A stretch of DNA of 64,000 nt, taken from Macrostomum hystrix. Its lineage: Eukaryota > Animalia > Platyhelminthes. The notes under the pieces were generated by a model. The model made no database searches. It saw only the letters and a list, made by a program, of their open reading frames with translations, and was not told where the DNA came from. The DNA lies in contig CATNEN010000031.1 in the NCBI GenBank assembly GCA_950097015.1, positions 372,001-436,000 of the forward strand. Reading direction: 5' to 3'. The translations under genes and the position numbers were made by a program. Below are positions 29,476-58,882 of the stretch, piece by piece; the first letter of the stretch is position 1; every line of letters starts with the position of its first letter.

Positions 29476-30312
29476 ATGGCGCACGCCAATGCACTTTTGC
29501 CACCCAAGTTTTCCGGCTCAGACGATGCCGACATCAACATGTGGCTGCAAATGTTTGAGGACTTCGCCACGGATTCCGAGTGGGACGACAAAAAGATGGC
29601 ATCGAAAATCCGGCTGCTCTTATCTGGCGAGGCGCTCGTCTTCGTGTGGGACCTGCCGGAGGAGAAGAAGAAGAGCTTCGCGACCATCAAGGACGAGCTG
29701 GTCAAGTTCTACCGTGGCAAGGAGAACTCGTTCTGCGCCATGTCGGAGTTCGAGAGCCGGAAGCGACGCCAAGGAGAGTCGCTGAGGGAGCTGTGCCACG
29801 CTCTCAAGCTCTTGTACCGGAAGGCACGCCCTGACCACGATCAGACGGTGAGAGACTGCGAAGTGCGACACCGACTGCTGGCTCTGCTGTCGAAGGAGAT
29901 TCGCGAAACGTTGCTGAAAGACGCTGACTGCAGCAGCAGCAGCCCGGAGCAGCTGGCGGACCGCGCCACGGCTCTTGAGAGCATCGGCGGCAGAGGCGCC
30001 TCTGCAAGCATCGCGGTAACATCGGTGAGCAGCCAAGTGGTGGACCGGCTGGAGCAGATGCAGGAGCAGCTGGCGGACCTGGCTGCGACGGTCGCCACCA
30101 TCAGCAGCCGTGGACAGCGCGGTGCGCGAGGAAGAGGAGCTCGGGGGAGAGGCAGCGGTCGCGGGAAATGCTTCAACTGCGCTCAGCCCGGCCATTTCGC
30201 GGCCCAGTGCCCCAGGCAGGCCGCGCCAGCCGTGCCGCCCGTGTGCAGCCGCTGCTCAGGCAAAGGGCACCGGGCCGAGGTCTGCCCGACCCCGGCTTCG
30301 GGAAACTTCTGA
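29476..30312 (+). CDS. gag: Retrotransposon Gag with two CCHC zinc knuckles
   Basis: Intact 278-aa ORF containing CFNCAQPGHFAAQC and CSRCSGKGHRAEVC. Confidence 0.93.
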   Translation: MAHANALLPPKFSGSDDADINMWLQMFEDFATDSEWDDKKMASKIRLLLSGEALVFVWDLPEEKKKSFATIKDELVKFYRGKENSFCAMSEFESRKRRQGESLRELCHALKLLYRKARPDHDQTVRDCEVRHRLLALLSKEIRETLLKDADCSSSSPEQLADRATALESIGGRGASASIAVTSVSSQVVDRLEQMQEQLADLAATVATISSRGQRGARGRGARGRGSGRGKCFNCAQPGHFAAQCPRQAAPAVPPVCSRCSGKGHRAEVCPTPASGNF

Positions 30313-30358
30313 GGACTGGTGACCGTGGGCCATCACCAGCCCTGCCTAGCAAGGCCCA
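30300..30358 (+). promoter_or_regulatory. -1 programmed ribosomal frameshift signal (slippery heptamer plus H-type pseudoknot)
   Basis: G GGA AAC at 30300-30306 in the gag frame; stem 1 ctggtga (30316-22) / tcaccag (30333-39); loop tgggcc pairs with ggccca (30353-58). Confidence 0.8.
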
Positions 30359-31370
30359 AACCGCTTCGCTCTTCCTGCCCGGCAGCATCGCAGGCCGGCC
30401 CTGCAGGTGGCTGTTCGACACGGGCGCGCAGGTGACGCTCGTATCAGCTGCCCAGTTTCGAGCTCTGGGAGTCGCAGCTCAGCTTCATCCGCCTCTCAGC
30501 ACTCCGGTCGGGATCGATGGTCGACGCTTGGAGTCTCCGGCATGCGCAACGCTGGCCATTCAGCTGGGCGGACTGCCGCCCATGGAGCACCCGGTGACGG
30601 TGGTCGCCGACATTCAGCCGGAATGCGTGCTCGGCATGGACGCCATCAGCAAGATGTGCTCAACCTTCAGCGTGGATCTCATGTCGTCTTCTGTCCTGCT
30701 GGGGTCAACCAGGATCCCAGTCCTGCCAGACAGGAACTCCATGCCGGCCTGCCGGGTGGTGCCCACCGCCGTGGTCGCCAGAGTCGCCAGCACCGTGTCC
30801 ATCCCAGCCCGCAGCCGCGTCATCATCCCGGTCAAGGTGGCATCGTACGTTGAGCAGGGTCTGTTCGAGCCCAGCTCTGACTTCGTCGACAAGACCGGCC
30901 TGCTGCCGAACCGGGCTCTGGTGGTCTCCAGCGCGGACGGCAACCTGCCGGTGGGAGTCTGCAACCTGAGCGCCGACCCGGTGGTGCTCTACCAGAATCA
31001 GGCCATCGGCAACTTCGACGCTGCCGAGCCTCACGGGCCCGACGGTGAAGCTGCGGAGGAGGCCGGCTTCAACATCAACCCGGAGCTGAGCCGGTCGCAG
31101 CGCGAGGTCATCGAAGCCCTGCTGAACCAGCATGAGCTGGCATTCGCCAGTCACGAGTTCGACCTGGGGACCACGCACCTACTGCAGCACGAGATCAACC
31201 TGGAACCCGGCAGCCGCCCCATCAAGCACGAGACGGAGCTCGGTGGTGCACCACGACCGGCTGAAAGCGTTCGTGGCGAGGCGGCCGCAGCCCGCTGTCC
31301 CGCAGCCCGCCGCCGACCCACCCGCTGCAGAGAGCGACCGGCCGCCCAGTCCGGCTGCCGACCCGCGTGA
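30300..31370 (+). CDS. pol: Truncated Pol in the -1 frame: aspartic protease plus the start of RT, then out-of-frame fusion to the integrase C-terminus
   Basis: WLFDTGAQVTLV protease motif; RT N-terminus ...LLQHEINLEPGSRPIK stops abruptly; another frame carries VVHHDRLK...RRSNRTRRQPD, typical of pol ends. No YxDD, RNase H or DDE core. Confidence 0.85.
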   Translation, partial: GKLLRTGDRGPSPALPSKAQTASLFLPGSIAGRPCRWLFDTGAQVTLVSAAQFRALGVAAQLHPPLSTPVGIDGRRLESPACATLAIQLGGLPPMEHPVTVVADIQPECVLGMDAISKMCSTFSVDLMSSSVLLGSTRIPVLPDRNSMPACRVVPTAVVARVASTVSIPARSRVIIPVKVASYVEQGLFEPSSDFVDKTGLLPNRALVVSSADGNLPVGVCNLSADPVVLYQNQAIGNFDAAEPHGPDGEAAEEAGFNINPELSRSQREVIEALLNQHELAFASHEFDLGTTHLLQHEINLEPGSRPIKHETELGGAPRPAESVRGEAAAARCPAARRRPTRCRERPAAQSGCRPA

Positions 31371-32544
31371 GACCTGGCAGGAGCTGCTGGACGAACCGGC
31401 GCCTGCTGGGCCCAGACGCTCGAATCGGACTAGGAGGCAGCCAGATTTTTTTGTCGCGCAATTTTGAGCTGCTAACTACTCGTATTTTTTTGTTCTTATG
31501 AGGCTTGTAGTGCATCATTTTAAGCTGCCTAAAATATTTGTTTATTTTTTTGTTTTTAATGTCCTCAATTTAGGGATGGAGTGATGTAAGGTGTGCGGTG
31601 ATTCATTCTCGCATCGCGTCGTAAGTTGGCTTCGTAAATTGTGCAATGCGATGTACATTCTCTGGTGTACATAGCCAAATATAAAGTCGCTCACTTGAGG
31701 CTTTAGTCACCTCGTGTTTTCTCGGTTCTCGCGCAAGTCTCGCCTTCTGACCTAGTTTACAAATTATTATTATTAAATATTATTACTTATCAATCAAGGC
31801 AAGAAAAGGGCGAATTCGCATGCAGCAAAAAAATATGAGACAAACAATATGAAATTTTACGAGCGGGAATACATTCTGGAGTACAAAAATTCACTACTGT
31901 AGAATTTCGGTTTATTTTTAGAATTTGAGCCTTTACGAAAGGACAACATGCGATTTATATTGTGTTTCAGCATGCAGGAAATAGTTAACCAGCATCAGAC
32001 TTAAACAAGGCTCAGACTGGATATAAGCTATAATTATTTGTTATAATATCTATAGCATGGAAGCGCTTTTTTCAAAGTTGATGAAGTTTGAGATTAAAGT
32101 TTTAAACTTAAAGTTTGAAGGGTTAAAAAAAAGTTAAAAATAAGTTGTCAAGAAGCAATGAATACGAGCTATAACTGGAATATAATATTACGAACATACG
32201 TTTACACTTGAATAAAAAATGCTTTAATGTGATACAAAATTCCCCGCTTTTTAAAAAGGAGCAGGTTTGACTCGATTAACAGACTGATGTGTTTTATACA
32301 TAATGTGAATAGCTCTTAACAGAAAGTTTTAAGTTAGCTCTTAACATTGCATCATCAATATGCAATGAGTACTGTATGTATGATGTATGATTACTACTGA
32401 AATACAACTTTAAGGCATACTGAAATATCGCTGCTCACTCTGATAGTTGTGAATGTGAATCATTCTGAATATATGAATTAATTAATGATCATTTTTGCAG
32501 GAAGGCTGTTGCGTCGATCATCATTTTGCGTCGATAGAACCGTT

Positions 32545-33100
32545 CCGCTGACTCCCGAGTACACATGCACGCAGATATACTGTACGCTCGCACACACTCA
32601 CACAGTTGTGTACATCTGCCCTGTATTTCTAATCGTCAGGCTTTCACTGTGCCTTGGAGGACATAAATTGCATGACAAGCCCAATCCTTCTCGCGGCGGC
32701 TGCTCCCTAAAGGAATGTGGCCACGCCGCGGAATCGAGCTCAGTGACTTTGGTGTGAGAGGCAAACGCGTTAGACAATGCACTCTGCCACTCACGCTCTG
32801 GAGTGACTTTGGTGTGAGAGGCAAACGCGTTAGACAATGCACTCTGCCACTCACGCTCTGGAGTGACTTTGGTGCGAGAGGCAAACGCGTTAGACAATGC
32901 ACTCTGCCACTCACGCTCTGGAGTGACTTTGGTGCGAGAGGCAAACGCGTTAGACAATGCACTCTGTCACTCACTCTCTGGAGTGACTTTGGTGTGAGAG
33001 GCAAACGCGTTAGACAATGCACTCTGCCACTCACTCTCTGGAGTGACTTTGGTGTGAGAGGCAAACGCGTTAGACAATGCACTCTGCCACTCACGCTCTG
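32545..33100 (-). mobile_element. SINE family B whose 5' tRNA-like segment is amplified as six 60-bp tandem units (32741-33100)
   Basis: Body matches the other B copies up to ggaatcgagctc; then a 60-bp unit agtgactttggtgtgagaggcaaacgcgttagacaatgcactctgccactcacgctctgg repeats six times. Confidence 0.88.
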
Positions 33101-33366
33101 GATAAGCTAAATTTACCGCTAAGTTCAAAGTGGTTGCAAGAATAATTAGAGCATTTTTTCCAAAAAACCTTGGAAATTCTAAAAAAAGAGTTTTAATCGC
33201 ATGAATGGATAGTCTAGAAAATATACTCGTGAAAAGAAAATCTATGCTCACAGTAGTTTCTGGCTATTGATAGATTTTATGAAAAAGGATAAGGTAGAAA
33301 AATAAAAACAACTTTCTCAATTGAAAAAGCCACAATGTCAATCACAGACCACCACAGCATTTCCGA

Positions 33367-36300
33367 TCACTTGCAATTTACGCGATCAGGCAGAATTTTC
33401 GGCTCTTCGTCATCGTAAACGGACTAAAAAGGTGAACTTTGCATTCATTAGTTGTACTTTTAGTTCAAAATCTACTCGAAAAATCACCGTGCAACTCACG
33501 TTCGGGTCGATATACTCGTCGTTGTACACGGTCTGAAATAAGCCAAGAAAGGAGCAGTATAATAAAAAGGATGCAAAGAACCACCTAGTTGCTATCAGAG
33601 AAACATGAAGCTTTTTCAAAAACCTACATTCGGATCTATTGCCAGTGGCATGCTGGTCATTGGAATCGAACCCGTCTGTTTTCGAAGCACGAGCAGTTTT
33701 CTCGAAGCTTTCATTCGGCTAAACATCCGCATCGCAACAGAAGCTATTGCAGTGATAGCCAGAGTCACTACCACAGCCACAATGAGAACCGAAAACAGCT
33801 GGTCATTCGACCATTGGCCCGAATGCGGTTCTAAATAAATAGAAATCGATTTTAAAACAAAGCATCATTTTAAGCAAGTATTTTCCTCGATTCACTACTA
33901 ATGCTACGTTCCTACACCAGTGCATCGGCGTAATCTATAAAAATTTGCACATTGAAGTCATTCTTAAATACTGTCATTTTTCTCAAGGCTAAGTGGTCAA
34001 TTTCAACAGTTTAAGTACGACAAGCATGAGTTACTAGTCTGCATCGGATTGCTGACTGGAAAGCGAGACTCCAATGTGAACTCCTCAATGCCCTGTTTAA
34101 TTGAGCAGGTAAATTTGACAGGCTCGGACTTGTTCATAGCGATCTCAGCAGAGTGCTGTCCGACTAGGAAAACTTCAGAGCCGCTCGCAGTTACGACCTA
34201 AATTAGAAGGATCTCTTAATTTCAAATTGAGGCATTCAACGAGTCTAAAAGGGCATATTTCTCACAAATCGAGTTCCTGTGTTAGTGAGTAGTGAACAAT
34301 TTACTATTGGGCTCGGAAAACCCTCGGTGACACTGAAGAAGATGAGCACAGATGATACTGAAATCTTTGCTCCCGTCAGCAGCACATGAGACCGGACTGA
34401 AAAGTCACGAAAACGGCACCATGTTTGGATCGCACCAAAAAAATGAAAAAAAATCGATAGCACCTGCCCCAATCGGGCCAGTTTGCGGCTGAGAAGGGCT
34501 GTTGAGTCAGTTGCCTGGGGCATCCTAAACCCAGAATTTCGCCAGCTAATTCTGGTACCCATTCAGCATCTGGGTGAACTCAATAAATGCCGAGTTAAGT
34601 GTCTTTCTAAAAGTTAAAAATGGTTACACTGAAGTCTGGAATCGAACCCGCGATCTTCGAGTCGTGAGTCCAACGCTCTAACCACTAAGCTACAACTCCC
34701 AACTCCTTCCTGCCAAAACAGGCACCATTACAGAGGCATATGGTTTAATTTTATTTGCGCTTGTAAATATTTGCGAGCATAAATTTTCTCAATTAAGTTA
34801 TTCATTAAGTAATGTTTGATTTGGTGAGAACATTACGACGAATTAGGCTCGTAAATTATATACATAGAAAACAATTCCGAAATCACTTACAGAGAGCGTG
34901 GGGCAGCTGATAGCTTTGCCAGGTCTCAGCAATTCCAGATTGGTTCACCAGACACCTGATATATCCAGAGCTGCCCCAGCTTTTGCTAACAACCAGGCGG
35001 AAATTTGTGCTTGAATTCGTTATCTGCAGCATAAAAGAAACGGAATTCATCAATCCTCATGCATATACCTTTGCTATGATAGAGTTCATGAAGCATTTAT
35101 AATGTTCATTTGCGAGTCCTTTGGCATCAATATACCCTCAGCACAGCGAGCAAGAAATTATGCCAAACACTAAATTTTATTTAATTTCTTGTCTGTTACG
35201 ACTTCGGTTTTGGAAGTAAACAATGAAGACTTTTAGTCAATCATGGGCAAAAACAACTAAATAGACCAAAGCAATGAGGATTCCTCTCATTCCTCTCTAG
35301 GATTCAGTATCAGCTCACCGAGAGGACTGGCAGGTTGATCTTGTCAACAGCAGGAGTCTCCAGTAGGCAGGTGCAGATTGTTGGCACCTGACTAAGGTTC
35401 GTGAAATCAAGCGTCACGGTAACAGTGTCGCCGTGCTTCCAATGGCTGGCTGGTGGCAGCTGCAATTCAGGTCTAATCGGTGCTGCAACAAAAATTTTCT
35501 GTACTCTCTTACACATCTATTGAGAAATGAAAGCTGGTAAATTGTACTCGCATGATCACAGGAATTAACAGCTTACCAACCAGCTCAGGTAGCTGAAGTG
35601 TTTGATTGCTTCTTATGCAGGCTCCTTTGAGCACCGACGCACAGAAGATCTGTTTGCCGGACATATCGTTCCGAATATTGAGCCTATACTCAGATTTCAG
35701 GCTGATAGTATGGGGTGCGGTGGCACTTTCCACGAATTCCTGATCGGCGATTTAAGAACATTCTGAACATAAAAACGCTAATTGTTTTGTGCTCAAGGCT
35801 GGCCAAACCTAAAGTTGCGCAGCTTTTATTGTAATACCTTTACAAGGAGAAACTTGACGAGATTGTCATACTTTATGAATAATTACTTGTATTATCAGTG
35901 TAATTATAACCATTCTGCTACTAAATCCAAATTCAAACGAGCCATGTGAGAGTATTTAGTATTTCATGCATAGGAGGTTGTACTATTGATTTACAAAATT
36001 CCTTTATGTATTCCTCATAGGCATTTTGCACTGCTCTTTCTATCATCCATGCATTTTATAACGTAATTAAAAAACGCTTTTCTAAAAGCCTCTGAAAATA
36101 ATTCAGAGATATTACAAAAACATTAGAATATTAACAGTAGAACTACCGTGGGGGGGAATTCTCCCCCCAGGCAATTTTTTGTGCTGCACCCTAACGGAAC
36201 TACGCAAGCACACGAAACTCAAGAGCACGGGCCAACTTTTTGTTGCGCATCTTCTGAGACAAGAATCAAGTCGCCAGTTCTCTTCAGACCGTTGAGATAT

Positions 36301-39300
36301 TCAATGGTTCTGGCCGAAGGTCAGATTTTTTCCATCAGTGCTAATGTATTTCAATGTAATGTAATGTAATGTAGTGCTAATGTAATTTATTACACCCCGA
36401 TACACAAATTAGCACTGCGCCTCAGTGTGGCGTTGCCAGGCCTTCAAAAATTTATCCGCATGTCACCCGAATGTGCCTGCATCATCTCCGACTTCGGTGG
36501 TGACTTACTTTTATCTAGACGGACTGCTGGACCTTCAAGGGCTACAACAGGTGGAAATAGGCCATTATGGACACCCTGACGCGAATTTCTCCAATTTCAC
36601 TGACCAAGCCGAAATTAGGCGCAGCTCAACCACAGTACACCATCGTCTAGTCTGTCAACCAATCAGTCACCACCCAACGCTGTTAGCATTCAGGCGCTGC
36701 CAAAGAAACTTCAACAGGGGGATTACAGTCCCCCCCTTGGTATAAAAACGGGCGTCAAAATGGCTTGGTAGTCCTACTGTTAAACTGAGCAAATGAATAG
36801 AACAACCTCCCATAGATCACATACTAAAATATTGAGCAGCTGTCTCACATGCCTTCACTACGGCGTTCTTCTACTCTAGTATTCATTAAATCCAAGACCC
36901 AAAATTAACTTCACGAGATGGTTATCTAGTGTTGCTTGCCTGGCTGCTAGGAGTCAAAAGACGATCCGCTGAGTCCCCGACACTGCTGGCCAGCTTGCAG
37001 AAGTGTACAGGCTTTGGGTAAGCCGCTTCAGTTACAAACGTGAACCGGAGCTTTGTTCCCTCTGCCAGAAAGTGACGCGACCCAATCTGAACCGCGTTGT
37101 GCTGTTCGATGCTGACGTTCCTTGGCACCTGAACTGTAAATATCGGAACGGTATTTTTCCTATAGTTTGTTGCTGGGACAGGAATTTGGTACGATGATGA
37201 TTTTAAGATAGTTTTTTGAAAGTTATATTAAGAGGATGTTCATAGAAACGAGCTTGAAAAATTAGCCCCGCGACGAGGAGATCATCAAAGCATTAGGCAA
37301 TAGGACATTGCGCATTAACTCACTGATATGTCCGATAGGTTCAGTCAGTGATACTTTAGGTCCATCGGGACAATTAAAGCTGCACGTGAAGTTACCGCCT
37401 TGCATGTCTGAATTGACCGGGAGCGTCGCAACTAAAGACCTAGGATTCCCATCCTGAAGAAGTTAGTGAGATTTTATTAGTCGCTTTATCATTAGTTTGA
37501 GCTGTGTTCGTGAAGCAGTACTCATATGATCTGATATGCCAACATTTATATTCTAACGGCGAGAAGCGCAATATCTAGGCATTCAGACGTCCTTTTACAA
37601 ATAGGTATCCTCAAAAACTTTTTAGAAGTTAGAATTGATTATATTATTGCTATGACAGGCGTAAGATAAGCTTGGAAACTTAGCAGTTGGTTGTTGGTTT
37701 CTCTCTGCACTGAAGAGAGTCTAGAACAGGGGTAGGCAAACTTATTTGCTGCCGGGCCAAAGAGAGAACCTAAAAGACGACAGCGGGCCGCATTGACTGT
37801 ATAAATATGAGATTGGGGAGAGATGAGACACGGGAGAGATGAGACACGGGAGAGATGAGACACGGGAGAGATGAGACACGGGAGAGATGAGACACGGGAG
37901 AGATGAGACACGGGAGAAGATGAGACACGGGAGAGATTAGACACGGGAGAGATTAGACACGGGAGAGATGAGACACGAGAGCGATGAGACACGGGTGAGA
38001 TTAGACAGGGGAGAGATTAGACACGGGAGAGATGAGACACAGGAGAGATTAGACACGGGAGAGATTAGACACGAGAGCGATGAGACACAGGAGAGATTAG
38101 ACACGGGAGAGATAAGACAGGGGAGAGATTAGACACGGGAGAGATTAGACACGAGAGAGATGAAACAGGACACTGTAGATGTCAGAAGGGGCAACGGGCC
38201 GGATTTGGGAGCTTCGAGGGCCGCATCTGGCCCGCGGGCCGGAGTTTGCCGACCCCTGGTCTAGAAGTTTGCGTTTTTGCCGTCTTATTTTTTTGTTCTT
38301 GCGATTTTTTTATCACCCCTCCCATCAGCTAACACAATCGACAATAAGAGCAGCGGCTAAAAGTGGGGATCGTCAGTCAGTCAGAGCCGTCGTCAGTCGT
38401 CAGTCTCAGTCAGTCAGCCGGCTCCTCATCTAGCCAGCTGACTGGAACTTTTTCTAGTCCGTATGTGAGGAAATTTTTTTTACAGAAATCACTATAGCCG
38501 GGACCATAAATTATGTATGACCGAGCAACTCATCGAGACACAGAAACTGTGACATAAAGTATGTTACATTTTACGCTAGGCATTTCGGTTGTTGTCTTTT
38601 GAAGTATAAAATAAGCAACGTATTAGCAACGGATTGATGAGCTCACCACTTGGACAATCGTGCTTCCACTCCGCGATTCAATGCGACAAGTAGCATTATT
38701 AACAAACTGGAGCAGGCATGGAGGGTAGAGATTGATGGCAATATTTTGACCGTCTGTGAGAACACTCAGACGGTTCATTTTGCAGGCGCAACTTCCTGTA
38801 TTGGATGGCCGGCATGAAAAATCCAGAACTGCCTCGGATACTGAAATTAAGCACAAGAAAAAGTCACACCGCGTCGCAAAAACCATTCAATAAAAGTCAT
38901 GGCTCATGCCTTTTTCGATTTCCAGAGACTTAAAGTTCATGCGGGCGAATCTTCTCAGCAAAATATAGTCGGTAATCTGTAACGAATAGCAATCCAGGTA
39001 AAGTAACGAGCTATAATTTGCTATTCGTTGATGAAGACACTCGTAAGAACTTACCTCTGTGCAGCTGGGGGCTCTGCAAGTCACAGTCATGCGTGACTGG
39101 CTTCCCTCCATCCTCGTGGCCCCGCACCGAGTTAAAAGGCTCACATCGCTGTCGATTGATGCATAGCAACTTCTTTCAGGAGTCAGACCGGGCGGTTGTC
39201 TGTCACTTAAGAAAATCTCGATGTTTTCTGCCTGGTTGAGAGCTAAAACAAATTTCATTTAAACCTTCTGTTAGCTAAACTGTCAGTTCAGTAAATTCAT

Positions 39301-39797
39301 CTTGTGCTTCGAATATGTGCAAGGTCGTAGCTCGTACCAAGATTTTACCCCAATGAAATTATATAATAAAATAATGAAGGTAATACACAATGCTTTACCT
39401 GTAGATTAACACTTACCATTGTCATTAGCAACAACAGTTACAGACCGCACCCGTATGGGTCGTGTAAGCTCTATTAGCAGCCAGTGATAGCCGAACTTAT
39501 CAGGCAAATCGGAGTAGAAATAATTCCACAAATCAATTCTTTTCACAGAATCTCTAAAGCAATCTTCGTTATTCGAAGACTGCCAGGAGTTTGCGATCAC
39601 ACCATGCTTGACCTTGAATGTGACACTGGCATTCACACACTGCGACCCTGTAGCGTCTGCAAAGTAACGAATCAGGTATGTCACGTACATAGGCTCCGGA
39701 TATCAACGCTGAAAAGCACAACTAGAGGCTCACCGCATCCTACGGAGCAAAAAGCCACGCACACGGCGCAAAGCGCACAGAGCAGAGCCGTGAACAT
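33367..39797 (-). CDS. Receptor paralog C: signal peptide + F-type-lectin/discoidin-like domain + four Ig-like domains + TM + Tyr tail, ~707 aa. Exons 39797-39734, 39656-39417, 39242-39055, 38976-38910, 38840-38647, 37453-37324, 37133-36940, 35739-35577, 35482-35319, 35023-34891, 34396-34266, 34197-34035, 33830-33628, 33532-33500, 33423-33367
   Basis: Fifteen phase-consistent exons (2124 nt, no stops). Signal MFTALLCALCAVCVAFCSVGC; TM LFSVLIVAVVVTLAITAIASVAM; tail AIDPN|TVYNDEYIDPN|SVYDDEEPKILPDRVNCK*. Two donors are GC. Domain names come from motif pattern only. Confidence 0.78.
34553..34701 (-). mobile_element. SINE family A in an intron of paralog C
   Basis: Minus strand reads gggagttgtagcttagtggttagagcgttggactcacgactcgaagatcgcgggttcgattcc...aagacacttaactc...ttcacccag...gggtaccag. 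Confidence 0.85.
36174..36490 (+). repeat. ~300-bp dispersed repeat, copy 1
   Basis: Aligns by eye with 46634-46910 (gcaagcacacgaaactcaaga.cacgggccaactttttgttgcgcatcttctga; cctcagtgtgg..ttgccaggccttcaaaa). Confidence 0.85.
37727..38258. mobile_element. hAT-superfamily MITE (532 bp) with an internal 16-bp GAGATGAGACACGGGA array
   Basis: TIRs CAGGGGTAGGCAAAC / GTTTGCCGACCCCTG; perfect 8-bp TSD GTCTAGAA at 37719-37726 and 38259-38266. Confidence 0.93.
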
Positions 39798-41249
39798 TAA
39801 CGTTGGATAAGAGCACGTAATTGATCAGCTGAATTGTACCGGTATCAGTACCGAGCCAGCAATGCGCAGGCTGGAGTATCACTAAGGCGCAATTGCTAGA
39901 ACAGCTTCTCAATTTATAGCACACAAATTCAAGGTGTTGTTATTTTATTGGCCCAACCAACTAAACTACTTTTATAGTTCAAACTAGGTCAACATTGGTG
40001 ATCCTGCTGGTCTAGGCATGTTTCCATCTTCGATATCTTAGCTGATTGGATAAAATTCACGTTTCTGGGTTTAGCTTGCAAAACGTATAGTTGTAAGTAA
40101 AGGTAATGATAAGAAATAGCGTCAAACATTTTCGAAATAGGCTTTTTACTTGTTCAGATGTGGTCGGTCTATTAGAAGCCAGTGAATTACGAATTGACAG
40201 GGTGTACAGGAATGCGGAAACGAAATTAAACTCGATGTAGAAAGAAATTTAAGAAGAAATAAGCGGAGTTTAAATTATCGATCGATTTAGCAGGAAAATT
40301 TAATATGACTCACGTGACTTCGAGAGCCTAAAGATAAGCCACACAATTTCAATCGACAAAAATGTAAAACTTCGTCAGGAAATTGATTGATGACTCATCG
40401 TTCAATCTCTCAGGGCATGAAAGCGTTTAAATATATATAAACAGGAAAAGTGCTTTAGACAAGGCGACTTTCGCAAAATTCATGAGACCAACATTGTTCA
40501 GAAAGCTATGCATTGTTGGAATTAGCATATGAAAAAATGTCTTTTGATTGTCTCAAAATCCATACACAAACTTGTATGCCAGCGAAGAAAATAGTTTGTA
40601 AAATTTGAAGTACCTGAAGATTAAATTAATTGTTTATTGTTTAAAGCTGCTTTAGTTCTAATCTGGATTAGATTTTAGCTCGTATTTTCATCGCATAAAT
40701 TAACCAGCGTTCCTTTTTACGAAGTTATATCGTGCACACGCAACCGAATGCTGTACGAGCATTAGTTTGAAATTCGAATAGTTTAAATAGTGTAAAACAT
40801 ATCGGGTTTTCATTATACAAAACAACTTAAAATGAAGAAGACGAAGAATCTACTTCAGTGTACGAGTCGTAAGATTATTCGGTAGAAACAAAAATTGTTA
40901 ACAGTTACGAGCGTGTTGTGTTAATTTGCGTGACAACTTTAATCTTTAATATAACAAGTTGGCTCGCTTCGCAAAATCGCTTCGGGGTGCAAAACAAGGA
41001 ATAATGTAAAATATAGGTATAGGAAGAATTCGGTAAATGTTTTGTAACTGAATTTGTAACTAAAACCCACTGGTTTATTCTTATCCTGTAGCTTTTTGCG
41101 CCGACAGAAACCCGAAATCTTTGATCGCCTCGAGCGGTGGAGCGGCCATAGCGGCAAGTCAGCTCGAGCTGTAAAGACGACGAGCTGTATCACTCAGTCC
41201 AGCTTTTTGAAAAATGTCGCATGGCGCTGGTTTTTGCAGATTTTATGGA

Positions 41250-42130
41250 TCCTTGAGCTGTGACATTGCTCGCTGACACTGCTCACTTAAATATAAGGCT
41301 AGCCCATAGAAGCAAGTTACCGAAATGCAACAATCCGACTAGTTCGTGGTCACTGCCACCTACCAGAGCGCTGCTAACTGTTTCACGGTCGGTCGTCAGA
41401 ACCAACAGCCACAGGGCCTGCAAAGCTCTGGTGGCTCGGGCCGCTCAGCTGCTCCATATGATCAATGATAGCTGGTCCATTGAACGCCAGAATTGATGAC
41501 CGCTTTTAACGATGCCAAGCAAGCGTTTGCCGGTGCTGCCATGTTGACGCATCGGCTATTCGACTTGCCAATTAGCCTGATGCTCTTTGACATCGTCATC
41601 GGCGTCATCAATGGCTTGGAAGCCTCTAGCTTTTATCAGCCGACAACCTCGCCCATTTCGCCCGTTCAGCCGACAACCTCGCAACATAGTTGTCCCCAGC
41701 GAGTGTTTCAGCAACGTCCGCATCGGTCTGTTAGGCCCCTGCCGATTTAAGTACAGCCGCTTAAATCCCACACTGGGCTGCCATTAGTGCCGGTGGAATC
41801 CGCAAGCTAGGCTCCCCTGCCACCTGCCGGAATCAATGGCAGAGCTTGTGTCATTGTGATAATAATGACCAGTTCTTGGCGCAGTTGCTCAAATCGCAGC
41901 CGTACATCCCGCTGCCCGCTGCCCTCAACTCCTGTACGCCAGCGTTTTTCAATCGAATGGAAGCCGACACCACTATGATTCTCCGTTTAGAGTGTTTCAG
42001 AGACTTTCATTCTGAACCCGTCGTGAACGTGAGTGGCGACTGCCTAAAATCAGTGATACTGATTCTGCCAACGTTTTCCTGTGCGGTTGAACCAACGCCG
42101 GCTTGCCATCCAACCTAGTAGCTACTGGAG
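41250..42130 (+). pseudogene. Degenerate Ty3/Gypsy pol remnant (RT connection / RNase H / integrase N-terminus)
   Basis: Broken frames contain AFNDAKQAFAGAAMLTH and WKPLAFISRQ, matching the RT-RNase H region; many stops and frameshifts; no LTRs recognised. Confidence 0.6.
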
Positions 42131-42856
42131 CAACCAACCTTTTTCAGGGCCGTTGCTAACCATTTTGGCAGTAAAGGTAACCATACGTGTCGGCTCGATG
42201 CTGCGGAGCTGTGATGGCGATAAGCATCTGCAATATTTTGTCTATGGCTGCAACCAAGCCCCATTTATGCCCGAACTTCTTGCATTAAACAGAAACAGCA
42301 CGCTCGCACTTTCTCTGTTTAATAAGCCAGCGCATTGTGCTGTTGCTTGGCCTATAGGCAAGGGCGTGCTTTTCTAAAGAAAAAATTATCATACGACTCG
42401 TATTTACAAAAAATTGCAGTGTTCAGATATTAAATTTATGGAAAAAGTTCCGATTCAAGTATTGGTCTCAAATCTCCAACACCATATTGTATATGGTATG
42501 CATAAATGATTTTTGTGTTTGCAGCGTTAGTGAGACATAATCAAGTCATGCATCTTTTTCGAAGGCAAAAACGTATCAAAAGTTCTTAAACCTTAAAAAT
42601 GTTGCTAGCAGTCAACGTTGCAGTTAAATTGATTACGAGTACATTAAAACTTGAGTAGTTCGTACTTCTGAGTTCGAAAGTCCTCGCTCTATTCATACGG
42701 TGTAATGAGTAGATACCTAAAAATTAGCATATCGCTTAATAATTTCCGCGGAACATCAATTAAAAAGTGTGCGAATTGATAGGGTATTGACAACGACGCC
42801 AGTTTAAGTGAAAGCAACAGATTTTAGTACCGCTTTCTAAAGCTCTTCAGTGTCTT

Positions 42857-45742
42857 TCAGTGTCTTCGAATGTCTTCGAGGTGGAGTTCGTACTCATTCT
42901 CGTCGAAAGTCTAAAAAGAAATTCCGTGAAATAGTTATACCAGTTTTATAAGAGATGACCGAGTCTGGCAAAGAAAACTGCGCGTGTAAGATGCATACGT
43001 TAGGATTTATCTTAGAAGAAGCCCCAGAAGGATTGCTCAGAGTTTGCTTCATTCCAGAGGCATTTTTTACGCAGAACGCCACGCAGATGACGCCGAAGAG
43101 GGCCAGCGACAGCGCACCGGCCAGGGCGAGAACTGTTGCGCGCATCTTTCCAACAAAAGTTCCTGGCGTCTCTGGTTCTTCCCATCCTCGGAAAACAGAG
43201 AAGGCAACCCTTGCAGTATTGCATTAAATCTCGCATTCTCCATGAAACATTCATCAATGAGTGAATAAGTACAAATAACCCACTCACTAAAGCACTCACT
43301 TATGAATCCAATGCGCTCGGTTACATTCACAGAGCGGCCATTGACACATTGAAGAGTACAGGTCAAGAAGCCACCTTGGATGCCAGGGCTGACCGAGAAC
43401 CGAGTAACCAATGACTCTGAACTATTTTCCTGTTGAATATTATATGACTAGACCAATTTCATGATTAGTAAGAGATAGAGAGAGGAAGAGATGCTTATGA
43501 AGTAACAATGGCTAGCTGCATATGTGCCCCATGAGGATGAGAGTGGAATTTATCGAATGTACGATTACAATGTGCTATAGACTAGTAATTAGGAGCTACA
43601 GGTCGTATATTTCTACATACCGTTGAAATGTTTCTCGTAGTTCCACTCGGTGATTTGATGCGACAGCTGGCCTTACGGAACTGGTGTTGGCACGGAGGAC
43701 ATATTTTCAAAGCAATTTCGTCGTGCATTTTAAGAAAATTCAGGCCAGGAAGCCTACAATTGCGAATGCCTTGAACAGTGGGCAGGCAATTGAAAACCAA
43801 AGCCGGCTGCAATGCTGAAACAGAAACAGAGTCAAGCTAAACAGAACACATTCCAAGTGGGTGCAATGCTGAAACATATATTCAAGCTAAACAGAACACA
43901 TTCCAAGTGGATGCAATGCTGAAACATATATTCAAGCTAAACAGAACACATTCCAAGTGGGTGCAATGCTGAAACATATATTCAAGCTAAACAGAACACA
44001 TTCCAAGTGGATGCAATGCTGAAACATATATTCAAGCTAAACAGAACACATTCCAAGTGGGTGCAATGCTGAAACATATATTCAAGCTAAACAGAACACA
44101 TTCCAAGTGGGTGCAATGCTGAAACATATATTCAAGCTAAACAGAACACATTCCAAGTGGGTGCAATGCTGAAACATATATTCAAGCTAAACAGAACACA
44201 TTCCAAGTGGGTGCAATGCTGAAACATATATTCAAGCTAAACAGAACACATTCCAAGTGGGTGCAATGCTGAAACCGAAACTGAGACAAGCTAAACAGAA
44301 CACATTCCAAGTGGGTGCAATGCTGAAACCGAAACTGAGACAAGCTAAACAGAACACATTCCAAGTGGCTGCAATGCTGAAACAGAAACAGAGTCAAGCT
44401 AAACAGAACACATTCCAAGTGGGTGCAATGCTGAAACATATATTCAAGCTAAACAGAACACATTCCAAGTGGGTGCAATGCTGAAACATATATTCAAGCT
44501 AAACAGAACACATTCCAAGTGGGTGCAATGCTGAAACATATATTCAAGCTAAACAGAACACATTCCAAGTGGGTGCAATGCTGAAACATATATTCAAGCT
44601 AAACAGAACACATTCCAAGTGGGTGCAATGCTGAAACCGAAACTGAGACAAGCTAAACAGAACACATTCCAAGTGGGTGCAATGCTGAAACATATATTCA
44701 AGCTAAACAGAACACATTCCAAGTGGGTGCAATGCTGAAACATATATTCAAGCTAAACAGAACACATTCCAAGTGGGTGCAATGCTGAAACCGAAACTGA
44801 GACAAGCTAAACAGAACACATTCCAAGTGGGTGCAATGCTGAAACCGAAACTGAGACAAGCTAAACAGAACACATTCCAAGTGGGTGCAATGCTGAAACA
44901 TATATTCAAGCTAAACAGAACACATTCCAAATGGCAGTACCCTTTGTGATTTCCAAAGCCTGGAAGCTCATATATTTAGCAGTTTTACTTTTGACGTGGC
45001 TCCTCAGCAGAATGAACTCTGTTAACTGCAATGATGAATGAGGGCTTTTAGTTTTGCTCCAGTTGCTTTCTGCTTACCCATCTCAAAACTAACCCTTGTA
45101 CAGTCGAAGTATCTGCAAGTCACCACAAGGCTAGTCCGGCCTGGCTCCCTCTCAGTGACTCCGCACCGAGTGAAGGAGCCCACGTCACTTGAGAGACTTG
45201 CATAGCAACTGCCCATTACCGGTGCCAAACCCGTAGGCCGTTGGTGGCCCATAAAAATCTCTATGTTCTCAGCAATGTTGGGGTCTAAAATGAATGTTTA
45301 ATTTAAATGCACGAAAGTAGTGAATAGAGAAATGGATGAATCGTACCCTCACCAGTATTAGGAGCGTAAACAGTGACCGACAGAACACGAATGGGCTGAG
45401 TCAGCTGTAGCAGCAGCCAGTGGTAACCAAAGTCATCAGGGGTGTTTCTAGAACGAAAGAATTTCGCTGAATCCTTGTATGTGACGGTGAAACGAAAACA
45501 GCCATTTTGAAACCCTGACGATTGCCAAGAATTTGCGACATTATTCTGGGTGATGTTAAAGCTGATGCTGTGAGCTTCGTGCTCGTACGGGACCTCATTA
45601 CAAACTGGAAAAGTTTGGGATCGAAAAAATACTGTAGTGCAGAGAGAATACAAACTATTTCCAAACAAAATACCAACTCACAGACTTCAATTGGCCATAC
45701 AGCGTTCGCGCACAGCATGCATAGCAACCAGAGCTGAGGCAT
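42857..45742 (-). CDS. Receptor paralog B: signal peptide + lectin-like domain + one Ig-like domain + TM + short Tyr tail, ~395 aa. Exons 45742-45682, 45631-45347, 45284-45094, 45025-44941, 43814-43621, 43429-43300, 43186-42999, 42910-42857
   Basis: Phase-consistent (1188 nt). Exon-for-exon similarity to C (ANSWQSS...FGYHWLL; AENIEIF...SCYAS; PPC..QF..A.CRI.S.SG; QGG..TC), with identical 194- and 130-nt exons. TM VLALAGALSLALFGVICVAFCV; tail INPN|TFDENEY. Confidence 0.75.
43806..44935. repeat. 50/54-bp minisatellite (~22 units) filling an intron of paralog B
   Basis: Unit gtgcaatgctgaaacatatattcaagctaaacagaacacattccaagtgg (50 bp), plus a 54-bp variant. Confidence 0.96.
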
Positions 45743-46633
45743 GATACGAGCGTAGCTGCTGCTGAGTCAGCACAGACAGTGGCACCCGGGAACCGCGTGT
45801 AACAACTGCAGCAACAATATTTATCAGCACCTAAATCGAGAGGTGTCGTCGTATGCTTATGTTCTGTGCTGTCTAGATGCTGTCGTGCACAGCACAGTTA
45901 CCCCATTGGTTTGATGAAATTAACACTGGAGACGGCTGAGGTGGAAGGCTGCGTCCTAATCAGTCCTGAAACCCTATCATTAAAACCGAATACTGTGTTT
46001 TATTTTAGCTTGCGAAAGCGCTTTTAAATTCACCACTTAAGCTAAGAACTGTCTGCTACATATCAAGTAAAGTCCTATCAAAACATGCCACTGAAGTTCT
46101 GCGTTGTGCTTTGATCTTTTCTTGTTTGCCTAGTACCTTAAAAATTAGACATCATACATTAATGTCCATCGCTGACAGGACATGACAGAAAGCCTTGAAC
46201 TTTCAGTTCTTCCATAAACTGACAAACTGGATCGAGTTTAAGCTTGAACTAATTTAAGCTTCAACGATGCCAAAAAGAATTTTCACTCGCATGTTTCCAT
46301 CCTGTCATCATAGCAAAATTATGTTCGCCCCGCTAGTGCATGTATTCCCTTAAGTTGTGAGACGATCTTGTCATGACAAAATTTGCGTCTTTGTTTAAAA
46401 AATAAATACAAATACTGTAAGTCCAGGTTTTTTAATTCTGATTTGAAGGTGTTTTGATACGAATTTATTGTGTATGTCTTAGCAAAGAGGCAAATTTTGA
46501 AATCATTCGCGCTTTCAACCGGAGCCATCCCGCCAAGCAAGCTCAATTTAGATATTATAAGCGCCATTGAAGCAGCAACTTGAGTATTGAAGCGAGTACG
46601 AATGAACAGTAGTACCAAGGGAGAGAAATGACA

Positions 46634-46910
46634 TTTTTTGTGCTGCACACAAACAGAGCAACGCAAGCACACGAAACTCAAGAACACGGGCCAACTTTTT
46701 GTTGCGCATCTTCTGAAACAAGAATCATGTCCCTAGCTCTTCAGACCGTTGAGATATTCAATGTTTGTGGCCGAAGGTCAGATTTTTCCTATAAGTGCTG
46801 TGTATTTGATACGTACCCCTAAACTTAAATAAGCACGGCGCCTCAGTGTGGCCTTGCCAGGCCTTCAAAATTTATCCGCATATCACCCAAATATGCCTGC
46901 ATAATCTCGG
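46634..46910 (+). repeat. ~300-bp dispersed repeat, copy 2
   Basis: See 36174-36490. Confidence 0.85.
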
Positions 46911-47184
46911 TCTTAATAGTCCTACTTTTAATACGTTATACGTTAAAGGGTCATCAAAGCAAAAATTCATTTGCAATATAAGTATTACTTGCAGAACTAT
47001 GTGCAAAAATACTGTCAACATATTCGATCGAAAAGTGACTGTGAATGGGGTGAGCGATTGAAAACTTTCGACTCTGGAACGGACTTCCATAAAAATTTGA
47101 CCAGGAGTATTCGTAGTTAGCATCTCTCGGATGAACTCGAGCTCTTGGAGCTCAAAGGTATATTGCAACAGTTCTTGTCATCAT

Positions 47185-49520
47185 CTATTCTTCTTCCTCA
47201 TCGTACACCGTCTGAAAAGCCAGGTTCGTTTTCATGGCCTCATTTTGAGCAGCTGTTGGCATGGCGAATTTTAGCATCGCGAAATTCGCAGTACAGAAAC
47301 TCACGTTTGGATCTACCAACAAAGCTCCCGGTACGAAATTTGACGGGAAAACGCTCTCCTCATAAGTATACGGTCTGAAAAATTCAGCTAGATCGTCAGG
47401 ATTATATCGGCAAATTTGGTTGCTTATAGGGGAAATGGCAGCAAAGGGTCTCCTTATTTTTCTGAGTGGCACCTCACGATATTTAAAACCCTAAATTTGG
47501 CCTATACTTGTCGGCATTAAAGGTTCTTATGCCGTCTTCATATGGGCATTCGGATGCATACGAGTGCATTCAATATTCAGTATTGCAAATTGTTGCAAAA
47601 GTTCTATTTTCCTGATCAATCCACAGACCTGCAACGAACTCACATTAGCGTTAGGCAATGATATTCCAGATTCCAGTGGAGGCTGCACTGTGTTCTCATA
47701 GTAAACGGTCTGAAACAGAACATCAGGTAAATACGTCTTTGAGCCACCTGTAGAACAAAATACTGTAAGCACTTCATCGGATCTGTGACACTCATGTTCG
47801 GATCCACAAATCTAGTCGCGGATTGAGACTGGTCTATGTTTTCCTTATCGTATACGGTCTGAAAATTATCATGTATCTACTATAATTGGATTGAAAGAAT
47901 TGCTTCAACGCATGGAAAATCCTGGCTCAAACGTACATTCGGATACCTCCCATGCGCCACAGGGACCCAGGTGTCTGCAGGCGCTTGAGTACGAGCCGTC
48001 CATCTTCTATGATTTAGCCAAATGACAGCGGTGTTGCCACTTGACCTTCTGATGCGGGCCCAGACTGAGATGACGGCAAGAAGGACCAGAAAGACAGCTC
48101 CAGTCAGGCCGAGAGCTAAGAAAACCATGAAAGTCTTGCCATCCTTCTTATCCTCTGGTTCGGAAAGCTGAGTCTTTCTGGATTTGATTTCTAAGGCGAA
48201 ATCATTTATGTCAAGGAAGTCCTAGCGGTTCTGCAACACAGTGCAGCTGATGTTGACGGATCGAGGTTGCTCTTTAAGACCCACCTGGGCAGAGTACTGG
48301 CCCAAGGTGAAAATTTCATTGAAGTATTTAGTCATCACCGTCTAAATTTAGGTTTCAATTGTTTTCAAGCTGCAGATAAGACACTATTTACACTTTTAGA
48401 AATCCAGTGAATTTAGGCAACCATTCGACAGCTTACATATCGCATCCCAGAGCTGGTATAATGATTGAGCAGTTCACTCGCGGCATCGGGTTCCCATCTG
48501 CAATTCTGATGCTCACAATTCTGAGCCGAGCTGTTAAACGCTCTGCGTCTTCTTTTAAGTCACGTAAACTAAAAAACTCACAAAGGACAGTAAGCCTCGT
48601 GTTAACCAATTCACTCAGATGCTCGTCTTGAATGAACTTGCAGACAACAAGCTTTTGATTATGTTCCTTCCGGGCAAGGAGCATGAAATTAGATGTATAT
48701 ATGTTCCCAGCAACTGTGCTCTGTGGTACATTTTGCAATGCCAGTCGGGAGTCCTTAAGCCGGCACCTATGCACTCGGACAGGAGGTCGGCTTTCAAATG
48801 AAATGAGACTTCCGTGCACCATGCTACCTACAGTGACGGCACCCGCTTTTTTGATGTCTACTATATTTAACACTCTGTCTGAAATGAGGGAATGAAAACT
48901 ACACAATAAATACTCGTACTTTCATCAAATTAGAGAGTTAAGAAAGTGATTTTTCTAACAGTTGACCGAGACGTTTTGAATACTGTTAGCGCTAAACACA
49001 GTTACGCTCGTAGCGAGCCGTGAGTCTGGAGCGCCGTACAAGTGACTCTCGTGTCACTTTTGTGTGGGTGTATTTCATTTGTCTGTAGCTCTGAGCCGAC
49101 ACGTTTTCTTTGCAGAATAGCCTGGGGAATAAAAGTTCGCTAAGAAATTCGCTAGTGGACTCTGCAGTGTATAAATGAATAGCATTTGCACATACGATTT
49201 TGCCGTTGTCTGCAACGCAGCTATGAGCAAGCACCGGGTTTCCGTCGCCTAATCTGACCGTAAAATAGGCGCTGACGCCTTCATAGACACTGAAAGCCAG
49301 CTGAAATTCAAGCGGAGGCTGCGGCTAGTCTAAAAGGGGATGATAAATTTTCCATCGCATTGATTACAGCATGATTTTTTTAATTCATGTCTTCGCATAA
49401 AAGCTCACAGAAAACCGACAGTCTGTGACAGACTGAGAAAACCGATTGTAAATTTCAACATTTCCTGTCTGAGTCGCAAGGAATTTCAGGGTGCCACCGT
49501 TCATTGAGCACGTAGCATTA
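47185..49520 (-). pseudogene. Receptor paralog A (Ig-like domains, TM, four PN|TVY tail exons), apparently decaying; 5' end not found
   Basis: IADGNPMPRVNCSII matches C's VTEGFPSPIVNCSLL, and EIFTLGQYSAQ matches EVFLVGQHSAE. In-frame TAG at 48224-48222 before the TM; AT instead of GT donor at 47795; 70-nt (frameshifted) tail exon 47374-47305. Confidence 0.7.
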
Positions 49521-49544: not shown

Positions 49545-50312
49545 GCATTTTTGGGGATGGAGCAGGATGGGGATTGAGCAAGATGGGAATTGAGCAAGAT
49601 GGGGATGGAGCTGGATGGGGATTGAGCAAGATGGGAATTGAGCAAGATGGGGATGGAGCAGGATGGGGATTAAGCAAGATGGGAATTGAGCAAGATGGGA
49701 ATTGAGCAAGATGGGGATGGAGCAGGATGAGGATTGAGCAAGATGGGAATTGAGCAAGATGGGGATGGAGCAGGATGGGGATTAAGCAAGATGGGAATTG
49801 AGCAAGATGGGAATTGAGCAAGATGGGGATGGAGCAGGATGAGGATTAAGCAAGATGGGAATTGAGCAGGATGGGGATGGAGCAGGATGAGGATTGAGCA
49901 AGATGGGAATTGAGCAGGATGGGGATGGAGCAGGATGGGAATTGAGCAGGATGGGGATGGAGCAGGATGGGGATTGAGCAAGATGGGGATTGAGCAGGAT
50001 GGGGATTGAGCAAGATGGGGATTGAGCAGGATGGGGATTGAGCAGGATGGGGATGGAGCAGGATGGGGATTGAGCAAGATGGGGATTGAGCAGGATGGGG
50101 ATTGAGCAGGATGGGAATTGAGCAAGATGGAGATTGAGCAGGATTGGGATTGAGCAGGATGGGAATTGAGCAAGATGGGGATTGAGCAGGATGGGGATTG
50201 AGCAGGATGGGAATTGAGCAAGATGGAGATTGAGCAGGATGGGGATTGAGCAGGATTGGGATTGAGCAGGATGGGAATTGAGCAAGATGGGGATTGAGCA
50301 GGATGGGGATTG
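49545..50312. repeat. Mosaic 16-bp-based minisatellite (GATGGGGATTGAGCAG/A variants)
   Basis: Direct reading; source of the SCSIPILLNPH spurious ORFs. Confidence 0.93.
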
Positions 50313-51162
50313 AAATGGTTAATCCATGTAAGAAATAACTAATTTCTAGAAAGACTAACGAAGGCACATTTTACAATATACCTCAGGCTATCTTTGCCTC
50401 TAGAACTGAGACAACTGCTGCAGGTGACTGTCAGCTAGCCATTTAGGCTATTTATTTATCTAGAATGACTCGTGATCACGATGAAAAAAACTAAAATTAC
50501 ATTCTTAGTACATTTAGGATACTTGAATAAATGTACTGATCGTATGTGGATGAGTTCATATAAACTAAAACACGATATAAGCTAGCTATATTGGTTGGTT
50601 GCAGACATGAGGACACTAATCGGGTACTTGCACGGATGCACGATCGAGTTAGAGTAGCAATAAATCAAGCTTGGAAAGCTAGCGCAGTAGGCAAATCAGT
50701 TTAAAAAACCCAAGCAAGTCTTTCATAAAAAACGAATAAAAAGGCAAACAATGCTACTACAAGTAATAAAAAATTACAACCAAAACAATTGTAAATCACG
50801 AGTAGCTAAACAATGCCAAGACAGGCTAATAGAAGCAGCAAAAAAACAGTTTTGAGGCAGCTAGCATTCATTTAAGGAATCTTGGAAACAGCCGGACAAA
50901 ACTAAGGAGCGTCGCACAGTCACGTGACAATCAAGATAGACACACAACTTTAATAAGACATCGGAAAAATTACAAAGCGTAGAAACAAACAAACAAACAA
51001 AAAATGACAGCATTGCCATAACTAAGTGTACTGCGCTTATGTAAAAACGTAGAATTTTTTCAACCAATGTTGAAGGGTTACTCAACGTGATTAACAATAG
51101 TCAACTTCAAAGTCTGCCCACCTTAACTAGAATCCACCTCCGTAAATACTTAAAGTTACTTA

Positions 51163-52196: not shown

Positions 52197-53745
52197 GCTT
52201 TCCATTAATGTTACTAATGCTATTATTAGAACAGTTATTGGTGTGACTCTGCACTGCTTCACTGCCCACTTCGTTCGGAATGACTGGTGCAAGCTTCTGC
52301 AACAAAAAGTGGTCCATTGCAAGGATCTGCTATTAGCAAAACTCTGAGGACTATGAATTTCGATTGCAAAAAGCGAGCACACCCTGAGCAAGGCGCTCCC
52401 ACTATGAGTAGGCAAATAACGATGATCAATCCATGCGTTATGCAATATTGGTGTTATAGATTTGCGAATCATTTGCGAAGCATTGCAGTTTGCAATTAAG
52501 TTAGTGAATTATTGTGGACAATATTGCAAACCTACTATGAGTAGCATGTTAGCAAAGCAGTGCTATAAAACCATTCAAACAAAATCAGTAAAGCCCCGTT
52601 ATCTGCATTATCAGGATATTGATTAGTAACTATTACCAATATGTATTACCAATATGCGCAAACAAAACGGACTGTACACAAGAGGCCAGTGACCCTAGCC
52701 AAATGAGGCCAGTAGGCCATCACAACTTCTGGAAGACGAATTAAATGAAATATTTTATCAGTGTCAAAATGGTTCGTAAGAAAGTTTAATCCCATCCTGA
52801 AAAATTCGACTGTTGGTCTATGATCGCATGGTCTATGATCGCATGGTCTATGATCGCATGGTCTATGATCACATGGTCTATGATCCTATGGTCTATGATA
52901 CCATGGTCTATGATCCCATGGTCTATGATCCCATGGTCAATGATCCCATGGTCTATGATCCCATGGTCTATGATCCCACGGTCTATGATCCCATGGTCTA
53001 TAATCCCATGGTCATGATCCCGTGGTGAATGTTCCCATTCTTAGTCTAGGATGATTCCGTGGTGAAAATTCCCACTCTTGGTTTGCAATCCTATTTTTAA
53101 CGATCCAATATTGGTCAGTCAGAGATCTATTCAAGATGGGCTATTTTTACAAGTTTAAGGAACCTTTAATCCATTTAGGTTCTGGTATCCCATACTCAAT
53201 AATATCCTGAAGGGCGTTATCCTAAATAATCTCACGAAGAGCGTATCCAGCCCTAGTCATCGCAAAAGAAGCCGAATCAGAACCCAGATTGAAAATCTGA
53301 TATCTCATTATCATAATTCAGGGTTAACAGCGGGCAATGATCAAAACAAAAGCGGAGCCCTGACTCACCAGGCTGAACTGCGGGCCAACATTGGCTGGTC
53401 CAGTCGGGGCCGCCGAAGCCAGCCTGGGAATGCCCGACATGCCGGCGCGAGGTTGCGGCAGGCTGCTGGAGCTGACCGAGTGCTGCTGCTGCTGCTGCTG
53501 CTGCTGCTGCGGTGGTGGGGCCGGGGCGGGAATTCTCGACCTTGGAATGGCAGACGCGGATACGGAAGCCGCCGCAGTCGTTGACGTAGCAACAGGCGAT
53601 GGCACAACAGCCGCGGCGGTGACAGCGGCGGCAGCTGAGGGGGCGGGAATGCGGCTCACGCCGCTTCCAGCTTCATCGCTAGAGCTGAGACGGCGTGGCA
53701 ACGAGCTGGCTGAGACCGTGGCTCCGACAGTCAATGGTGGGGGCA

Positions 53746-53809
<64 letters not shown>

Positions 53810-58836: not shown

Positions 58837-58882
58837 TACCGTACACCTAAATAATTCACAGAAACATATGAATATAGGGGAA

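Follow-up and report, generated by a model that had tools for sequence, protein, structure and literature searches.

Does a 64,000-nucleotide (nt) stretch of the genome of the flatworm Macrostomum hystrix (assembly GCA_950097015.1, contig CATNEN010000031.1, positions 372,001 to 436,000; hereafter the window, whose own coordinates are used below) encode receptors with a tyrosine motif, PN/TVY, that comes into existence only when exons are joined and that has been multiplied by duplication of mini-exons? Here and below, a slash marks an exon junction. Such a motif was proposed in a sequence-only reading of the window for the tails of three tandem genes on the minus strand, called here A, B, and C. 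These paralogues would encode members of a receptor family restricted to Macrostomum, type I membrane proteins in which a signal peptide, a fucose-lectin-like beta-sandwich head, and immunoglobulin-like (Ig-like) domains are followed by a single membrane helix and a short tail in the cytoplasm. The answer I favor, with a confidence only somewhat above even, is that the tails share a conserved element at the edge of exons, [T/S]VY followed by acidic residues, that it has been duplicated in mini-exons, and that it likely serves in phosphotyrosine docking. It would be the single conserved element of the tail and, in the last exon, would continue as EE-x(2-3)-LPDR.

The first matter to settle is whether the pattern at the splice edges exceeds what might arise by chance. 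Seven short predicted introns part the membrane-helix exons from small tail exons in the three genes. They are 76 to 95 nt in length, with one exception of about 270 nt, and have canonical splice signals, apart from the donor of the first tail exon of gene A. The [T/S]VY-acid element always stands at the extreme 5' edge of its exon, behind a short phase-0 intron, and the exon before TVY ends, in M. hystrix, with (D/N)PN. The recurring acceptor contexts on which the proposal was built, ttcag/ACCGT at 47858, 47709, 47374, and 33532 and ttcag/ACGGT at 47211, are all present. The window contains six instances of a YAG acceptor with codons for [T/S]-V-Y directly after it, as compared to 0.70 expected from 100 dinucleotide shuffles, none of which reached six, and all six sites lie on the minus strand within the tails of genes A and C. 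The donor pattern CCNAAY/GTR by itself is not enriched in the window (8 instances vs. 5.6 expected); five of the eight close a transmembrane or tail exon. Of these five, four precede a TVY acceptor by 76 to 95 nt, and the remaining one, that of gene B, precedes a TFD acceptor by 88 nt. The pattern is real and non-random.

The codons at the junctions vary synonymously: proline is encoded by CCG, CCA, or CCT, asparagine by AAT or AAC, aspartate by GAT or GAC, threonine by ACC or ACG, and valine by GTA, GTT, or GTG. No similarity was detected between the tail introns (all pairwise z-scores less than 2), and alignment of the exon flanks yielded nothing beyond the splice signals and the motif codons. 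The combination of synonymous turnover and dissimilar introns argues that the DPN and TVY halves are both translated and both under protein-level selection in M. hystrix.

As read from its letters, gene C is a clean copy bearing two modules, intact all the way from signal peptide to stop and with canonical splice sites. The exon for the transmembrane and juxtamembrane regions (33628..33830, minus strand), preceded by the acceptor tatttatttag at 33831-33832, encodes RMFSRMKASRK after a hydrophobic stretch of about 23 residues. It is in phase 1 at its start and in phase 0 at its end, where ...PLAIDPN meets the donor GTAGGT. An upstream intron of 95 nt and a downstream intron of 76 nt, both of phase 0, flank a symmetric mini-exon of 33 nt, TVYNDEYIDPN (33500..33532, minus strand; acceptor tatttcag, donor GTGAGT), after which comes the last coding segment, SVYDDEEPKILPDRVNCK (33367..33423, minus strand; acceptor ctttttag), with its stop at 33367. 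The predicted joined tail reads AIDPN / TVYNDEYIDPN / SVYDDEEPKILPDRVNCK and then the stop. The letters, the canonical sites, and the phase agree in every respect with the original description of AIDPN/TVYNDEYIDPN/SVYDDEE and its 33-nt exon at 33532-33500.

The tail of gene A begins equally well. Its transmembrane exon (47937..48190, minus strand) ends with ...AHGRYPN and the donor GTACGT, and the first junction (GRYPN/gtacgt, a 78-nt intron, ttcag/TVYDKEN) is the RYPN/TVYDKEN previously noted. The remaining junctions fared worse. The first tail exon, TVYDKENIDQSQSATRFVDPN (47796..47858, minus strand; 63 nt, acceptor ttcag), ends with VDPN, directly after which (beyond 47796) stands ATGAGT in place of a GT donor, so the supposed junction VDPN/TVYYEN is not usable as assembled. 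The nearest good in-frame donor past this exon is CAG/GTGGCT, with the GT of the intron starting at 47747; its use would add 16 residues and would change VDPN/TVY to VLQ/TVY. The second tail exon, TVYYENTVQPPLESGISLPNAN (47644..47709, minus strand; 66 nt), has the donor GTGAGT. The third (47305..47374, minus strand; 70 nt) reads in frame TVYL and then stop (TGA at 47362-47360), having TT at 47365-47364 where the second exon has a single T. It is only in the shifted frame that this exon leads to ...ESVFPSNFVPGALLVDPN, and to write its beginning as TVY(Y)EES, as had been done, masks the insertion of one nucleotide. The fourth TVY segment, TVYDEEEE and a stop (47185..47211, minus strand), lies beyond the in-frame stop of the third. 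Because of that insertion and stop, translation no longer proceeds in the frame needed for VDPN/TVYDEEEE, and this last of the claimed junctions therefore falls outside the assembled reading frame. The intron between the third and fourth segments (47304-47212, 93 nt) contains no in-frame stop and, if retained, would keep VDPN and TVYDEEEE with its stop in a single open reading frame (ORF; 47185-47472).

The 5' part of gene A presents a further problem. Exons related to the family are confined to 49.5-47.2 kb, and neither a head exon nor the first Ig-like exons could be detected upstream of 49.5 kb as far as position 64000, a region filled with satellite arrays and containing a transposase fragment. 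One of the arrays adjoins the most upstream detectable exon of the gene (49528-49424) and may mark the point of truncation. Considering the lost donor, the frameshift leading to a stop, and the lack of 5' family exons, gene A is probably a damaged copy and probably truncated at its 5' end.

Gene B shows a third condition. The open part of its transmembrane exon (42999..43145, minus strand) ends with ...SSKINPN and the donor GTATGC, and after an intron of 88 nt and the acceptor ctttttag comes the last coding segment, TFDENEYELHLEDIRRH and a stop (42857..42910, minus strand). The predicted junction, KINPN/gtatgc...ttttag/TFDENEYELHLEDIRRH, is the one previously given as INPN/TFDENEY and is present as described, but it has no tyrosine at the position of the motif: TFD (ACT TTC GAC) takes the place of the TVY (ACC GTN TAC) of the other genes, and the tyrosine may have been lost through two point changes. 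The intron of gene B that separates the head exons from the next ectodomain exon is filled by some 22 tandem copies of a 50-nt unit (43808-44934).

How might the mini-exons have come about? That of gene C puts together TVYNDE, which corresponds to the 5' end of the last exon, and YIDPN, which corresponds to the 3' end of the membrane-helix exon, as would be expected from a tandem duplication centered on an intron. The exons of 63, 66, and 70 nt in gene A share their ends with it. Tandem duplications of the segment ...IDPN-intron-TVYxDE could have produced symmetric mini-exons in which a TVY-acid half is fused to an xDPN half, which would account for the two modules of gene C, still intact, and for as many as four in gene A. 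Since the introns show no similarity, these duplications would be old, discernible in exon structure and not as DNA repeats. Skipping of the 33-nt exon of gene C would restore IDPN/SVY. The notion of symmetric phase-0 cassettes holds for the phases of the introns and for the internal exons of 33, 63, and 66 nt, but not for the third tail exon of gene A, with its 70 nt.

To judge how far the element is conserved, the family itself must be considered. All searches were made with single exons or with database proteins. A profile of the head exons of genes B and C matched 16 proteins in a library of 1.8 billion, and all true homologues come from Macrostomum lignano. Gene C matches proteins of M. 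lignano exon by exon, through the signal peptide (39788-39738), the head, and a series of Ig-like segments, and gene B has a shorter version of the same layout. An AlphaFold model of the head (predicted local distance difference test score of 70) has as its top Foldseek matches the F-type lectins 1k12 and 3cqo, with E values of 2-3e-5 and template modeling scores of only 0.44-0.48. Pfam matches of the head to the F5/8 type C domain fell below the cut-off, the C2-set_2 domain is borderline in the M. lignano protein P0017 (21.4 bits vs. a cut-off of 21), and single exons from the window had no Pfam match. The structural model suggests a head resembling fucose lectins, and the ectodomain appears to be Ig-like.

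A comparable tail is found in the M. lignano protein P0020 (A0A1I8J1C7), where the membrane helix is followed by ...GRPADVPLVPTVYYYEENPALPDRPPSVEE... and the tail reads ...LVPTVYYYEENPALPDRPP. Aligned from the first residue, the last exon of gene C, SVYDDEEPKILPDR, and the corresponding segment of P0020, TVYYYEENPALPDR, are identical at 8 of 14 positions (E value of 0.003, in a single comparison), a result in favor of the last exon of gene C being translated in this frame. No alignment with P0020 was obtained for the exon of gene C that encodes the membrane helix and juxtamembrane region. Judging from this comparison, [T/S]VY-acid-LPDR is the conserved part, across species, of a tail that otherwise evolves rapidly. 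The model for P0020 starts with the tail of another receptor (...STVYYYEENPALPDRPPSVEETD...EFYVQ) and continues into the next head (residues 1-55 and 700-760), implying that TVY-type genes lie in tandem in M. lignano as well. Conservation of the tyrosine extends to genes A and C and to P0020, but not to gene B.

A paralogue that is more distantly related, P0004 (PAA49974.1) of M. lignano, has in its tail a canonical immunoreceptor tyrosine-based inhibitory motif (ITIM), VVYAQV, and an ITSM (immunoreceptor tyrosine-based switch motif), TEYTEI. Two M. lignano loci (L001 and L002) contain this ITIM/ITSM paralogue and no TVY exon, and a search of the literature on Macrostomum and ITIM found nothing relevant. 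By analogy only, P0004 makes tyrosine signaling plausible for the family: its motifs occupy the same position in the protein, and the tyrosine of [T/S]VY would most probably be a site of phosphorylation or docking in an acidic context.

In order to assess whether the element belongs to a known class, each copy was compared to the established motifs. The position three residues after the tyrosine (+3) is acidic, asparagine, or a stop in all copies, so that the lack of the hydrophobic residue typical of ITIM and of the immunoreceptor tyrosine-based activation motif (ITAM), noted at the outset, is confirmed. ITIM ([I/L/V/S]-x-Y-x-x-[I/L/V]) is rejected on this ground, the residue being E, N, or stop in TVYDKE, TVYYEN, TVYL-stop, TVYDEE, TVYNDE, and SVYDDE. 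ITSM (T-x-Y-x-x-[V/I]) is rejected as well: five of the six copies have threonine at -2, but none has V or I at +3. ITAM calls for two YxxL/I separated by 6 to 8 residues, and no predicted tail has even one. The endocytic signal YxxPhi fails for want of any copy with a hydrophobic residue at +3, and NPxY fails because position -2 is occupied by threonine or serine, with the proline at -4. YxN of the Grb2 type occurs only in gene A (in RYPN and at the second tyrosine of TVYYEN) and not in genes C and B. The minimal form NxxY is found at two predicted junctions in gene C and at two in gene A, one of them clean and the other ending in a stop after TVYL, and is not found in P0020 (LVPTVY). The gene structure may recall that of ITAM genes, in that a phase-0 intron is predicted just before [T/S]VY in six copies, but the tyrosine and the residues downstream of it lie in one exon.

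Several observations count against the interpretation favored here. The only consensus for a Src homology 2 (SH2) or phosphotyrosine-binding (PTB) domain that the element fits is the minimal NxxY, and it does so by means of an asparagine that is not conserved: P0020 has LVP rather than DPN before its tyrosine (LVP-TVYYYEEN). Since the PN half is absent there, the idea of a motif brought into being by splicing alone is weakened. The tyrosine and its acidic context are wholly contained in one exon. Two of the four junctions of gene A, the main case for a multiplied motif, are defective, and these defects could themselves be errors of assembly. The sole comparable tail found in M. lignano belongs to a chimeric gene model; a search of regions with the P0020 tail for a second tail of the TVY type found only P0020 itself. 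In P0004 one exon encodes both the membrane helix and the tail; the split is therefore not family-wide and would be specific to TVY-type tails. Finally, a search of transcript-derived proteins with the membrane-helix exon of gene C, which sees only proteins of 37 to 117 residues, gave no candidate.

Other explanations must be weighed against the same facts. According to the sequence-only reading, PN/TVY is genuinely composite, a motif of the NxxY type (a PTB- or kindlin-like ligand or an endocytic turn), made only at the exon junction, with a copy number tuned by skipping. Position -3 is indeed asparagine at all the junctions predicted for genes A and C, DPN has been retained despite synonymous change, and skipping any exon bounded by phase-0 introns would restore xPN/TVY. 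The lack of that asparagine in the M. lignano relative speaks against this view, however, as do the proline at -4 rather than -2, which does not make an NPxY, the loss of tyrosine from a gene B that retains NPN, and the two of four gene A junctions that are unusable as assembled. I regard it as unlikely. Its further extension, that (D)PN/TVY-acid is an undescribed composite docking motif of flatworm-specific receptors, assembled by splicing only and regulated in copy number by the inclusion or skipping of mini-exons, I consider decidedly improbable; if true, such a motif would be an independently evolved invertebrate counterpart of the split ITAM and of the tail splicing of PECAM-1.

One may also suppose that the tyrosine is incidental, and that what matters are the exon-initial threonine or serine and the acids that follow, as in an acidic-cluster sorting signal or the target of a Ser/Thr kinase (CK2-type, S/T-x-x-D/E). 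Every copy opens with threonine or serine, even that of gene B (TFDENE), every copy has an acidic run, and S/T-x-x-D/E fits the first and fourth segments of gene A, gene B, and the last exon of gene C. That the tyrosine should nonetheless be retained in six of the seven copies in the window and in M. lignano (TVYYY) is not readily accommodated by this account, and Y or N stands three residues after the threonine in the second tail exon of gene A, the mini-exon of gene C, and the M. lignano copy, which is at odds with CK2. Nor does it accord with the use of tyrosine motifs by P0004, and I find it, too, rather doubtful. A more skeptical account regards the tail exons as what remains of decayed duplicates, or as being spliced otherwise, with the proteins ending past the helix by read-through (e.g., ...DPNVGF and a stop in gene C), so that the pattern is inherited and now functionless. 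The dead donor, the frameshift, and the missing 5' exons of gene A, together with the degenerate motif of gene B, are what such decay would look like, but gene C has canonical sites and shows no damage between signal peptide and stop, the amino acids are conserved amid synonymous turnover, and the last exon of gene C is conserved across species. Wholesale decay seems a poor prospect.

Some other features of the window should be recorded. Satellite arrays with units of 14 to 60 nt are found at 49552-50313, 37816-38167, 32742-33102, 54169-54608, 58800-60800, and 62050-63010. An ORF at 58227-58697 (plus strand) has the C-terminal signature of a mariner/Tc1-like transposase (FQQDGAPAHT...) and is probably a transposon fragment. 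Another, at 53324-54061 (minus strand), specifies 245 amino acids rich in poly-Gln and Ser/Pro/Ala and could be either a low-complexity coding exon or a repeat artifact. Just downstream of gene C lies a GC-rich (0.59) retroelement fragment (29476-31500, plus strand), comprising a gag-like ORF with CCHC zinc knuckles (CFNCAQPGHFAAQCP) and then a protease/pol-like ORF.

I return to the interpretation preferred here, an exon-edge [T/S]VY-acid element multiplied in mini-exons, to compare it with systems already known. The NPxY/NxxY consensus is used in the LDL-receptor family and in the tails of integrin beta chains. The predicted spliced tails resemble these in having asparagine at -3 from the tyrosine, but they differ in the proline at -4 rather than -2, in the lack of a hydrophobic residue at -5, and in the asparagine not being conserved in M. 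lignano. Within the family, P0004 shares the head, the Ig-like stalk, and tyrosine motifs in the tail and differs in the nature of those motifs (ITIM/ITSM) and in the single exon that holds helix and tail.

The nearest parallels in gene structure come from vertebrates. In receptors of the CEACAM type, the YxxL of the ITAM is "characteristically" split by phase-0 introns (PMC2832619, PMC5112662). The predicted Macrostomum tails are like those with ITAM (CEACAM3-type receptors, CD3, FcR gamma) in being tails of putative receptors of the Ig superfamily with a tyrosine motif, several small exons, and a phase-0 intron, but the intron falls two residues before the tyrosine rather than inside YxxL, there is no YxxL/I pair, position +3 is acidic, and the family is unrelated and restricted to flatworms. 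Eight exons, subject to alternative splicing, encode the tail of PECAM-1 (CD31); without exon 14 the ITIM tyrosine is missing and SHP-2 is no longer bound (PMC5664058). The likeness here is one of principle, the number of docking sites being set by the inclusion of exons; both splicing and function have been demonstrated for PECAM-1, whereas the Macrostomum tails are known from sequence alone and their motif is not an ITIM. Teleost NILT and other ITIM receptors have phase-1 introns in the ectodomain and phase-0 exons for the tail motifs (PMC3022915), and the membrane-helix exons of genes C and A show a like pattern, with phase 1 at the start and phase 0 at the end, although the ITIM consensus is not matched.

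Tyrosine tails that are split between exons or altered by exon skipping are therefore already known in vertebrates, and the novelty lies in a motif of another kind, carried by an undescribed family of flatworm receptors. Should splicing follow the model and the tyrosine be phosphorylated, these tails would provide a first handle on signaling by the lineage-restricted, lectin-headed receptors of Macrostomum, a genus of flatworms kept in the laboratory, and would add an independent case in which phase-0 mini-exons have served to build and multiply tyrosine tails, as in the immune receptors of vertebrates.

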